A program made the position numbers and the translations under genes. From the NCBI GenBank assembly GCA_020536535.1, contig JAHLWZ010000798.1, positions 84,177-148,176 on the forward strand: a DNA stretch of 64,000 bases. The letters run 5' to 3'. The notes under the pieces are model-generated. The model searched no databases. It was not told where the DNA came from and saw nothing but the letters and a program-made list of their open reading frames with translations. Shown here piece by piece: positions 49,733-52,813 of this stretch; position 1 is the first letter of the stretch, and every line of letters starts with the position of its first letter. The DNA comes from Pelomyxa schiedti. Its lineage: Eukaryota; Protista; Evosea.

Positions 49733-50214
49733 TCACGGGTTGAGGTAGAGTATGTGCCTTGTCATCATCAGGTCTGTTTTGCGTAGGCAATAGATGATCT
49801 TAAGTTCTATAGCACAAGGCACAGTGGCCAAGTGCACATAAACTCCAAAAGTATCTGCTGGTTGCTCTGGAACTCCCTCCGATTCCCTCACAGGTTCTAT
49901 CAGTCTCACTGTTTTCTATATCCAAAAAAAAAAAAAAAGCAACAGAGTGAACTGGTTAACGAGAAGCCATCCGCTGGGGGAAACCCCAAACACCAAACCC
50001 ATAACTTGGGCAATGGCAACAAACGCACGTTTATCTTCGCGTCATTGGCGTAGTCAGGGACCATGGCGGCCTTTCCCTTGGCCACCATCGCAGGTGGCTC
50101 ACCAGACTTCGACAACCACACCTCGCAGCCCTCGTCCAAGTGGCTCGTGGTGCCCTCCACGTCGTGCCGGTTGTAGCTCTCAAGGTACCCCTTCACAACT
50201 TCTACCGCGTTCAT
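49733..50214 (-). CDS. SnoaL-like / NTF2-fold small protein; two exons
   Basis: MNAVEVVKGYLESYNRHDVEGTTSHLDEGCEV...GKAAMVPDY fits the SnoaL-like N-terminal pattern. One GT-AG intron leads to a beta-rich second exon ending in TGA at 49733. Confidence 0.75.
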
Positions 50215-50361
50215 TCACACGATGATTCGGGGGTTTCTAGTAACCCTGGAGATTGGAGCCTTCCTTGAGGTGCTGAGGGGAAGCTCGCCAGGAGCGACCA
50301 CAGTTTATCATTGAGTAGTTATCATCAGCACATTGAGGCGGGAGTGGCATCAAACCCCGGA

Positions 50362-50412
50362 CTCAGATCTGAGATGGACCATCTAATACTCCTAGTTTAA
50401 AGGAGTATTAGA
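50362..50412. promoter_or_regulatory. Perfect 12-bp palindrome (CTCAGATCTGAG, 50362-50373) and perfect 12-bp inverted repeat (TCTAATACTCCT-N7-AGGAGTATTAGA, 50382-50412) in a divergent intergenic spacer
   Basis: The repeats are read directly from the sequence; a regulatory role is inferred only from their position. Confidence 0.5.
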
Positions 50413-50441
50413 ACAGAACATATTGTTAATAGCACGACGAC

Positions 50442-52074
50442 ATGGCACGCTGCGGTGACGATGCGTGGGGCGATCAAAGCGGCAGATATGAAGTAGATGT
50501 ACGTACGTTTTCGTCCTCCTCACAGGCAGCAAGATCTCCGCCTTCCCGTCCTCCTCCTACAATCGCGATCTCGCCCTCGCCGAGCCAATCTGAGGTCACA
50601 TCGCCATCGCCGACGCGAACCGCTGAAAGCGACGCATCATCTACAACCGCCGCGACGAGCCAAGTCGTTACGAAAGCTGCCCTCCGCAAGGTGATAACTG
50701 CTCCTGGCTATAATTTCGTGTTCAGCACATTTGACGGCTCCTCTATACGATGGGGAAAGGACATGGATGACGATCCGCTGATGGCTCCTGGTCCAGGTTT
50801 GTATCTCTTTTCAGTTTGCTCCTTTGTATCTTCGTGGATAACTTTTTGTTTTTTATTTGGTGAGTGCCTTCGCTTTGTACTGATACAATATGCCCTATAT
50901 CTCGCATTTGGTAATGTCCTTCTTTTTAACAGAGTTGTGTGATATTGAGTTGTCAACTATCTGTCATGGAATTAATGGCATTCCTTGCGACTTCTGTTAC
51001 AAGGTTTCTTTCCGATCTTCATGTCTACTATTTATAAAATCAGTCCAATACTGCCCGTGGAGAAAACATGTCACTTGATACCTTCAAGAAATTGTTCCAC
51101 AAGCTTCCGCGCACCGTGTGTCAAATTGCATTTGGAATTGGAGACATCTCCGGTAACCCCGATCTCTTCTCCATTCTGGAATATTGCAGGTTTACACATA
51201 CCTACAACTATGCGTTGGTTTAATGCCAGTTCACAGATCAAATGACTACAATTACGTAGTGCCAAACATCACCGTGAATGGCGAGGGTATCTCTGGTTTT
51301 CATATTTCACAACTTGTGAGGCTTTGTGGCAGTGTTGCTGTATCCCGGTACCCAAACAACAAGGAGAACTGCTATGCCACTGTGGAGCGCTTACATGCAG
51401 AGGCACAGAGAACCCATGCCCGGCTTCAGATCAATATTCACGTTGTGTTTTCTAAACAAACTCTTCCGCTTATCCATGAGCTGCTCCATGACATAACCAA
51501 TGATGACAGGCTCGCTGGGAAAGTGTTTGCAATTGTACTCCTGAAAGTAAAACACAGAGGACGAGCAAGCCCCTCAAGATACACACATGCGTCTCTGGAG
51601 GAGTTGAGAGAGATTGTGTCTATTGCATCAAGAGCCAAAGTCAGACTAGGTGTGGACGCTTGTGGTGCATGTGATTTCTACAGAATGCTGGAGGAGACTG
51701 AAAAACTTCGCCGACCAGAAGCTGAGGAGTCATCACCTACCACTACTTCTACATCGACTACAGAAATGGCACCAACAACTCGTTCCGCAGAGCCTGATCG
51801 TTGGGCCGATATTCCGGCACTAGAAGACGCCGTCACCTCGTTCAATGGCTGCGATTCCATGAGGTTCTCAGCGTACATCAATGTGCGCTGTGAAGCCTTC
51901 CCGTGCTCTTTTGTGGAGGCAGCCTGGCCCAAAGAGCACACCATGAACGTTCTTGAGTGCGCGGACTTTGGGGCTGACATTTGGCGCTCTTGTGCTTCGC
52001 ACTCCTTCCGCACTGACCTCATGTCAACCTCTGATATTGTGGAATGTTGGAGGTGCAAATTCTTTGACTGGTAA
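50442..52074 (+). CDS. Radical SAM enzyme with CX7CX2C cluster motif and C-terminal twitch/SPASM-like cysteines; three introns
   Basis: Spliced RWGKDMDDDPLMAPGPELCDIELSTICHGINGIPCDFCYKSN, QIAFGIGDISGNPDL, VPNITVNG, CGSVAVSRY, GVDAC, GCDSMRFSAYINVRCEAFPCSF. Confidence 0.9.
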
Positions 52075-52170
52075 CCCACATGCCATCAAACAAATTTTTT
52101 TTAAACAAAACCTTCACATTTTATACAACAAAGTCATTTCCTTGTTTGAATGGAGTAGTTAATGAGACAC

Positions 52171-52813
52171 TCAATCCATCATAAGAGGGTGGGAGGTTGT
52201 TGGGGGATGAGGTGTGGGAGCGGAAAGGGGGGGAGGAGAGGGGAGGGTACCCCCCCCCTCTCTTTCTTCTCCCCCTCCCCACTCCTCCAGGGTAGGAGTG
52301 TTGACGGGGAGAAGAAAGAGAGCGAGTGGTGCTTGTTGTAGAAGTAGTTGTGATTGTGGACGTGCCTGGGGTAGTGCCAGGAGACAACGAGCGTGGGTAT
52401 GGCTGTGGCGGTGTTTGGACCCTTGGCTGCTCATCATCGGTGGGCGGGGGATGGAGGCGTGGGCCTTGTGCTGGGGCTGTGACGGGTGACCCTTGGCCAA
52501 GAACTTGGCAGTCCAGGGGTAAACGAGCCCAGGCACTTTGTACGGCAATTTGCGCATACGGATGGCCCGATTCGCGTCTTGCAAATCCTTAAAGCAAACC
52601 CACGTGTGAAGAAGGTCGACGTTGGCACCGGGGGGCCTGTTTGTTTGCTCTAGTGTACCAACTTCGTAGCTCCTGTCGGGGACGTTAAAAGCAGGAAATT
52701 AAACAAAAAAAGTGATACCCAATAAATCTCAGAGTGGAAAGGCTGCCCTCCACAATTTCCTTGGTGGTGGTGCCATGTAAGGACGATAGATGCACATAGT
52801 ATCCCGTCGCCAT
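52171..52813 (-). CDS. Small RRM-like protein; at least two exons
   Basis: YYVHLSSL (RNP2-like) and TWVCFKDLQDANRAI (RNP1-like) joined by one intron. Confidence 0.5.

Follow-up and report, generated by a model that had tools for sequence, protein, structure and literature searches.

Radical S-adenosylmethionine (SAM) enzymes canonically carry the cluster motif CX3CX2C, and spacing variants of it are known, among them CX14CX2C in Burkholderia multivorans QueE and CX5CX2C in HmdB. The described enzymes that best match the protein reported here in structure, its N-terminal region included, are SuiB/StrB, the streptide Lys-Trp cyclase, which has two auxiliary clusters in a full SPASM domain and, in addition, a winged-helix RRE, and SkfB, a sactipeptide thioether synthase of the twitch type; a further point of reference is BtrN, the 2-deoxy-scyllo-inosamine dehydrogenase that founded the twitch class, a protein of 250 aa with a canonical CX3CX2C motif, no N-terminal domain and a small-molecule substrate. 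Here we describe a radical SAM gene of the amoeba Pelomyxa schiedti, which lies on the + strand at 50442-52074 of a 64,000-nt stretch of its genome (assembly GCA_020536535.1, contig JAHLWZ010000798.1, positions 84,177 to 148,176 of the forward strand), referred to below as the window. Our verdict is that the gene is a real, functional-looking, new eukaryotic member of phrog_7293, a phage family with no assigned function. We put at roughly three in four the joint probability that it is a functional nuclear twitch-domain radical SAM gene of this family, that it was acquired horizontally, and that it has the chemistry and the peptide or protein substrate proposed below.

The Pelomyxa protein differs from each of the described enzymes. 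Its identity to SuiB and SkfB is only 14-16%, and unlike SuiB it has a short N-domain and a single predicted auxiliary cluster. As in the gene clusters of RiPPs, peptides made by the ribosome and then modified, candidate substrate genes adjoin the phage members of the family, but their products are not leader-core peptides; they are folded proteins, 60-280 aa long, that carry a tag at the N terminus. With BtrN it shares the order C-x17-C, about 45 residues, C-x2-C. With QueE and HmdB it shares extra residues between the first two cluster cysteines and a retained CX2C end, and with QueE also a loop length that varies between orthologues of one family, although there is no kinship to either in sequence or function. 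The phage members of phrog_7293, such as Klebsiella phage Miro gp194 (YP_009607359.1) and Vibrio phage D479 VPHD479_0104, are 30-45% identical to the Pelomyxa protein over the full length and share its N-terminal beta domain, variable loop, C333 and twitch cysteines, whereas three introns, an S/P/T-rich extension of about 80 aa and an insert of about 38 aa are present on the Pelomyxa side only.

Gene structure

The joined frame of 1410 nt encodes 469 aa, followed by a TAA stop (52072-52074), and is divided into four exons by three GT-AG introns, with a GC content of about 50% in the coding sequence and 30-40% in the introns. The features of the gene are listed here in window coordinates; L003 is a second eukaryotic copy described below.

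50442..50796, + strand: exon 1, with the start codon, the N-terminal extension and then the family beta domain; called from its open reading frame (ORF) and the donor GT at 50797; the motif YN..F...G..RWGK..DDP..GP lies within the N-terminal four-strand beta domain (phrog_7293 positions 7-60)
Within exon 1 (about residues 1-80), + strand: N-terminal extension, S/P/T-rich and eukaryote-specific, missing from phage relatives
50797..50932, + strand: intron 1, 136 nt, GT-AG, phase 1, 35% GC; same position and phase in the L003 copy
50933..51003, + strand: exon 2, 71 nt, containing strand beta-1 of the barrel together with the radical SAM cluster motif (phrog_7293 positions 63-84)
50962..50997, + strand: SAM-cluster motif C129-x7-C137-x2-C140 (C-HGINGIP-C-DF-C), predicted ligands of the SAM-binding [4Fe-4S] cluster
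51004..51043, + strand: intron 2, 40 nt, GT-AG, phase 0, 30% GC; same position in L003
51044..51189, + strand: exon 3, 146 nt, with SNT..G.NMS, helix alpha-1 and the QIAFGIGD..NPD segment (phrog_7293 positions 85-131, E 3.8e-4)
51190..51236, + strand: intron 3, 47 nt, GT-AG, phase 2, 40% GC; same position and phase in L003
51237..52074, + strand: exon 4, with the rest of the (beta/alpha)6 barrel, C333, the low-complexity insert, the twitch domain and TAA (phrog_7293 E 9.4e-24)
51661..51663, + strand: C333, in G-x-D-[SA]-C; model residue 258, after the strand at 253-255 that follows helix alpha-6
51700..51813, + strand: low-complexity insert (about residues 346-383, about 38 aa), S/T/P/E-rich and eukaryote-specific, between barrel and twitch domain
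51817..52071, + strand: twitch (truncated SPASM) domain, with the hairpin C396-x12-[G409 to C]-x4-C414 and then C461-x2-C464, predicted ligands of one auxiliary [4Fe-4S] cluster

Each exon alone matches phrog_7293, and the matches follow the order of the profile (7-60, 63-84, 85-131 and up to 359 of 384), giving a near full-length, collinear match. When the protein is aligned with nine relatives, the splice junctions GP/E, CYK/SNT and YC/R-SNDYNYVVPNITV (a slash marks each junction) reproduce the family consensus without gaps, and judged by this alignment they are not due to chance. Pfam and NCBIfam searches with single exons gave nothing useful; PHROGs alone recognised the family. A first-pass annotation, made from the letters of the window, had called three GT-AG introns, and their coordinates and phases hold: the ORF is intact, and the spliced product is identical to the GenBank entry "radical SAM protein [Pelomyxa schiedti]" (469 aa, on a 148-kb contig), which a word-indexed search with exon 4 retrieved and which is labelled P0001 in our comparisons. 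The gene is thus already in GenBank, under a generic name. P. schiedti, a free-living anaerobic amoeba of the Archamoebae, has 7.4 introns per gene, 98.4% of them GT-AG and 1.6% GC-AG (PMC8887013), and the P. schiedti papers (PMC8887013, PMC10579272) carry no mention of the radical SAM gene.

The assembly was made from individual cells of an amoeba that is full of prokaryotic symbionts (PMC8887013, PMC10579272), and the gene might accordingly be a phage or bacterial contaminant, or sit on a chimeric join. We consider this next to inconceivable, given that the three spliceosomal introns have AT-rich interiors, that contigs from three DNA runs span 49800-52029 without a break and the deposited contig is 148 kb long, that other intron-rich genes occupy the window, and that an independent eukaryotic contig has the same intron pattern.

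A second eukaryotic copy

That contig, L003, is a 2.8-kb Logan contig from run ERR12015700 with 40% GC, and the three introns of its homologue interrupt the same codon positions in the same phases, exon 2 (71 nt) and exon 3 (146 nt) being as long as in Pelomyxa. Its intron 2 (L003:1020-1065) reads GC...AG in the shortest in-frame model, the one that keeps exon 2 at 71 nt; an alternative GT donor 9 nt downstream would add three residues. Over 392 codons the two proteins share 58% identity; the nonsynonymous divergence (dN) is 0.41 and the synonymous sites are saturated, and in the tree the two are sisters with support of 100. The low-complexity insert, missing from all phage relatives, is shorter in L003. 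Beyond the gene itself there is no synteny between L003 and the window, the flanks of the two copies having nothing in common, and a word search of 5.8 billion proteins found one further eukaryote-like homologue only. Since L003 shares the introns and combines low dN with saturated synonymous sites, the gene has long resided in a eukaryotic lineage under purifying selection. The suggestion of the first-pass annotation that this is a domesticated acquisition is borne out by the introns, the S/P/T-rich N-terminal extension and this orthologue with identical intron positions in a second eukaryote.

A variable cluster loop

Exon 2 reads ..STIC-HGINGIP-C-DF-C-YK, with the motif placed after the strand CDIEL and before the aromatic Y141. 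Because the whole motif sits in one exon, splicing cannot change its CX7CX2C spacing, and it neither restores CX3CX2C nor breaks the 469-aa frame. In a family alignment of 103 non-identical members C129, C137 and C140 are kept in 98, 102 and 103 members, respectively. A loop of 3 residues, that is the canonical CX3CX2C at the same columns, is found in 34/103 (31 aligned directly and 3 on inspection), one of 7 in 36/103 and one of 12 in 11/103, the rest lying between 5 and 22; the HGINGIP loop of the phage locus L010 is identical to that of Pelomyxa. Seven being the commonest length, CX7 is a trait of the family and not an amoebal novelty, so that the non-canonical motif to which the first-pass annotation drew attention is real but is not special to the amoeba. 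To our knowledge, the spread of loop lengths in the phrog_7293 family (3-22, with modes at 3, 7 and 12) is wider than that documented for QueE.

Fold and predicted clusters

An AlphaFold2 model built from a 95-sequence alignment has a mean predicted local distance difference test score (pLDDT) of 92.7 and a predicted TM score (pTM) of 0.90. From the N terminus it shows a beta domain of four strands, then the (beta/alpha)6 barrel, a low-confidence loop and a C-terminal domain made of a hairpin plus helices. The four short strands of the N-domain lie at model residues 2-29, without helices, and beta/alpha units alternate at model residues 45-248, while the only low-confidence stretch (pLDDT 62-64) is the eukaryote-specific insert. 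In VIA-align SuiB ranks highest (Z 25.4, 307 residues aligned, root-mean-square deviation 3.2 Å) and SkfB comes next (Z 23.0, 287 aligned), ahead of anSME (Z 20.1), ChlB (19.0), CteB (18.9), viperin and PqqE (18.4), MoaA (16.7), BtrN (only 13.5), LIAS (11.7) and Elp3 (9.1); more than 30 solved radical SAM enzymes match with Z 12-25, and Foldseek returned the same families. In a profile search of the PDB SkfB was the best genuine match (E 5.7e-4) and BtrN was also matched; pentatricopeptide-repeat chains topped that search and were discarded, their score being a sum of short repeats. A phmmer search of P0001 against the PDB gave no match.

Besides the SAM-cluster cysteines, C333, C396, C414 and C464 are invariant (103/103), and C461 is present in 64/103. 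The cysteines noted at first pass in GVDAC, GCDS and FPCSF correspond to C333, C396 and C414 and are thus both real and conserved throughout. In the CX9-15GX4C hairpin motif both cysteines are found in 103/103 members and the glycine in 87/103. The protein lacks the full seven-cysteine SPASM motif with CX2CX5CX3C, and since only C461-x2-C464 follows the hairpin, the domain is of twitch type with one auxiliary cluster. A profile alignment sets C414 on BtrN C187 and C461/C464 on BtrN C232/C235, which we take to be cluster ligands there; C396, C414, C461 and C464 would, by this comparison, ligate the auxiliary cluster. C333 could be a catalytic residue or hydrogen-atom donor, as in radical SAM epimerases, or an alternative fourth cluster ligand in members that lack C461. 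No RRE (winged-helix) family was found in a Pfam scan of the protein, and its N-domain lacks helices. Motif, barrel model and the SkfB, SuiB and BtrN matches together indicate that the protein is a radical SAM enzyme with a twitch domain, in keeping with the auxiliary-cluster domain expected at first pass.

Distribution and tree of the family

A tblastn search found the family in 171 phage records, mostly T4-like phages of Klebsiella, Enterobacter, Cronobacter and Citrobacter (KP15, KP27, Miro) together with Vibrio phage D479, annotated as "hypothetical" or "radical SAM superfamily protein, contains SPASM domain"; in Miro and D479 the surrounding genes mostly encode hypothetical proteins. A pattern scan of IMG/VR added at least 100 relatives at 30-39% identity, many on contigs of 100-460 kb, and the nearest clusters in the ESM Atlas are 83-100% viruses, chiefly Uroviricota. 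Two peptide patterns recovered 16 loci among 185,579 prokaryotic species genomes: ten contigs of metagenome-assembled genomes (MAGs) with the phage tag module described in the next section, four loci of a divergent cellular subfamily, and two fragments. The cellular subfamily (L094-L097, from Flavobacterium columnare, Pseudozobellia thermophila, an Anaerolineae MAG and a Bacteroidaceae MAG) has 27-29% identity, a CX3 loop and a long branch, and matches query residues 3-249 only; it is the sole clearly chromosomal branch of the family that we saw. These results agree with the first-pass suggestion of an uncharacterised family that is common in large phages and in prokaryotes that are uncultured.

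The family is not modelled in NCBIfam, which gave no match to P0001 either, and members with the canonical loop fall far below the cut-offs of many SPASM-type maturase models. None of the vertically inherited eukaryotic families MOCS1/MoaA, viperin/RSAD2, RSAD1, TYW1, LIAS and Elp3 is the best sequence or structure match to P0001: MoaA, viperin, LIAS and Elp3 rank below SuiB and SkfB structurally, and Pfam matches are not significant. The gene therefore does not belong to any of these families, in line with the first-pass annotation.

In the tree, P0001 falls in a 99-row clade (support of 100) that is otherwise viral or from MAGs, the second eukaryotic copy excepted, and that stands apart from the cellular subfamily. 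The row nearest to the eukaryotic pair is L006, a 188-kb contig whose genes neighbouring the homologue match PHROGs, with 83 support in the Shimodaira-Hasegawa-like approximate likelihood ratio test (SH-aLRT). The CX7 loop shared with L010 and an identity of 38-45% to phage members, as against 27-29% to the cellular subfamily, lean to the phage side. On these comparisons we conclude that the gene was acquired horizontally and belongs to a family that is now overwhelmingly phage. An O2-sensitive enzyme is no paradox in Pelomyxa, because the host is a strict anaerobe.

Tagged proteins beside the phage enzymes

Around 94 family members, every ORF up to 6 kb away was clustered, and one neighbour family stood out, with 247 ORFs in 71 loci, all on the enzyme's strand (198 downstream, 40 upstream). 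Its proteins have a median length of 131 aa and a mean net charge of -9.9, compared with -0.2 for other neighbours, and 222/247 begin M-K-[IV]-R-x-G-F-V-S-N-S-S-S-S-S-F-[IV]-[IV], the remainder of each protein being highly variable; within this tag K2, R4, G6, S9, N10, S11 and S12 are invariant. A motif search found at least one tagged protein within 6 kb in 75/94 loci, with ten at L091. Reciprocally, a DNA pattern for the tag retrieved at least 120 further IMG/VR stretches, and the enzyme lies within a few kb in 40/118 new ones. Tandem arrays, identified by the motif, are located as follows.

L006:8804-12387, enzyme's strand: tandem tagged-protein array
L010:3845-5975, enzyme's strand: tandem tagged-protein array
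L091:8462-12800, enzyme's strand: tandem tagged-protein array
L002:3813, enzyme's strand: tandem tagged-protein array

The tagged proteins correspond to phrog_7397, annotated as "unknown", and have no Pfam or NCBIfam family; a literature search found no record of the tag motif. A tblastn search of phage records with one tagged protein found none, probably owing to the masked serine run and the variable bodies. A model of one tagged subfamily has pLDDT 91, with the first 12 residues in a low-confidence coil and strand 1 starting at residue 13, and Foldseek found no PDB match for it. The invariant, apparently unstructured tail is best explained as the site that the phage enzyme would recognise and modify, and in large phages tag and enzyme look like the two parts of a so far undescribed protein-tagging module, enzyme plus substrate.

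At the other end of the proteins, one tagged subfamily (relatives of L006:9516-10001) has an invariant G-A-x-R-N-G at the extreme C terminus, and a C-terminal [ND]G occurs in 34/247 tagged ORFs compared with 17/1649 other neighbour ORFs.

Contrary evidence and alternative explanations

A number of observations weigh against the reading set out so far, and they concern the gene itself, its donor and its substrate. At the level of the gene, contigs from a single-cell RNA library (contigs, not raw reads) cover 51332-52077, which is exon 4 to 3 nt beyond the stop, and there are none on 50136-51311 and none that spans any of the three junctions, so that the case for splicing is a comparative one. 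Spliced RNA is present in the library, because a contig of the upstream minus-strand gene skips 49912-50028. PF04055 (Radical_SAM) has no match to P0001 at E <= 1; in relatives it scores 13.6-29.8 bits against a cut-off of 29.5, with P0006 alone passing, and the expanded loop and general divergence probably explain the missing match. PF13186 (SPASM) gives P0001 10.9 bits against a cut-off of 21.5, where P0002 reaches 24.2 and P0008 is also above threshold. As the Pfam threshold is not reached, radical SAM membership is argued from motif and fold. In addition, Pelomyxa has a cysteine, C409, in place of the hairpin glycine, which L003 keeps as G, and NGCDS in place of EPCES. Such a record could be that of a decaying, non-functional relic or a mis-predicted gene model. 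This seems to us very improbable, however, since the 469-codon frame is intact over four exons with every family-invariant residue retained, the orthologue combines the same introns with saturated synonymous divergence and a dN of only 0.41, the model is of high confidence, and RNA-library contigs lie on exon 4. We therefore continue to regard the gene as functional.

As to the donor, the approximately unbiased (AU) test did not reject a tree that unites the 97 phage and MAG rows in a single clade and leaves the eukaryotes outside it (p-AU 0.785), and this tree had the higher likelihood; long-branch attraction to the outgroup is possible. A nesting of the eukaryotic pair inside the phages, seen in a quick tree, was withdrawn after this test. 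Because the AU test allows the eukaryotes outside the phage clade, a phage is the likeliest source by distribution and not a demonstrated one. Of the prokaryote/phage-type origin proposed at first pass, the mainly phage character of the family stands, and between phage and prokaryote as donor the AU test does not decide. The gene could then have come from a cellular prokaryote, either an endosymbiont or prey, with phages and amoeba sampling the same pool independently. This would suit a eukaryotic pair placed next to the bacterial L094-L097, as the AU test permits, the support of only 83 SH-aLRT for a sister relation to L006, and the prokaryotic endosymbionts that P. schiedti harbours according to PMC10579272. 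It fits less well with the low identity and CX3 loop of the cellular subfamily compared with the phage members, with an amoebal CX7 loop identical to that of a phage, and with the fact that nearly all other prokaryotic matches are MAG contigs with the phage tag module. We treat a prokaryotic donor as a serious but doubtful alternative to a phage.

As to the substrate, an ORF with the tag is absent both from the 64-kb window and from L003, and a word search for the tag returned unnamed metagenomic proteins only, with no Pelomyxa entry, although this search cannot exclude one. The KP15/Miro clade has the enzyme without tagged neighbours (62 of the 176 kb of the Miro genome checked), and the cellular subfamily L094-L097 likewise has none, which speaks against a universal link to the tag. 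Since the KP15/Miro clade does without tagged neighbours, the tag is not an obligate partner and a BtrN-like small-molecule substrate is possible. The enzyme would then act like BtrN, DesII or BlsE, and the tagged phage proteins would be merely co-located early genes. Consistent with this are the twitch domain with its single auxiliary cluster and BtrN-like spacing C-x17-C ... C-x2-C, the presence of BlsE, DesII and viperin among the fold matches, the lack of an RRE-type winged helix, and the absence of tagged neighbours both from that clade and from Pelomyxa. The top structural matches that also cover the N-domain, however, are the peptide and protein modifiers SuiB, SkfB, anSME, ChlB and CteB, the link to tagged proteins is strong in both directions, and the tag is disordered though invariant. 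We accordingly hold a small-molecule substrate to be unlikely and favour a peptide or protein.

Flanking sequence

An RNA contig on 49800-50053 (- strand) joins 49911 to 50029, which points to an intron of about 117 nt in the upstream gene. That gene is transcribed divergently, and its ORF (49906-50214, - strand) begins 227 bp away from the start codon of the radical SAM gene; Pfam recognised none of its ORF pieces. Just 3' of the stop, 52195-52300 consists of a purine-rich run (GGGGGGAGGAGAGGGGAGGG), GGTACC and then a pyrimidine-rich mirror (CCCCCCCTCTCTTTCTTCTCCCCCTCCCC); the DNA contigs of all three runs break at 52200 and 52258, one with a 2-nt insertion at 52249, and this element is likely hairpin-forming or unstable in assembly.

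Discussion

In the history that we propose, a eukaryotic ancestor would have taken the gene from a tailed phage or from the prokaryote that this phage infects, and the three introns, the S/P/T-rich extension and the low-complexity insert would have been gained before the split from the L003 lineage. By analogy with the superfamily, C129, C137 and C140 would hold a [4Fe-4S] cluster across the 7-residue loop, leaving a free iron to bind SAM; reduction would cleave SAM to a 5'-deoxyadenosyl radical that takes a hydrogen atom from the substrate; and the twitch domain's own [4Fe-4S] cluster (C396, C414, C461/C464), the second in the protein, might accept the electron or position the substrate, with the invariant C333 predicted at the mouth of the barrel. 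With less certainty than for the chemistry, the substrate is most likely a peptide or protein, and in phages the best candidate is the invariant N-terminal tail MK-I/V-R-x-GFVSNSSSSSF of the neighbouring small acidic proteins. That the amoeba has domesticated a phage protein-tagging system as such, with tagged substrates of its own elsewhere in the genome or with endosymbiont or phage proteins as targets, is a speculative extension that we think has little chance of being right.

There are few documented transfers from a phage or its host to a eukaryote that selection has maintained long enough for conserved introns to arise, and the signature here is clean, in that the family is almost confined to phages and three introns are common to two eukaryotic copies; the relatives of the Pelomyxa gene are viral rather than cellular. 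Within the family, cluster loops of 3-22 residues on one scaffold form a natural series that is useful for asking how far CX3CX2C can vary. The arrays of tagged acidic proteins provide a concrete candidate substrate for an uncharacterised, widespread phage enzyme, and Vibrio phage D479, which is cultured, carries both the enzyme and a neighbouring tagged protein, VPHD479_0110. Of most interest are the near-exclusive phage distribution, the loop-length series and the module of phage enzyme and tagged protein. If the proposed activity is correct, folded proteins would be modified at the tag by a radical post-translational reaction of a new kind, and the tagged phage proteins may be anti-defence or host-takeover proteins.

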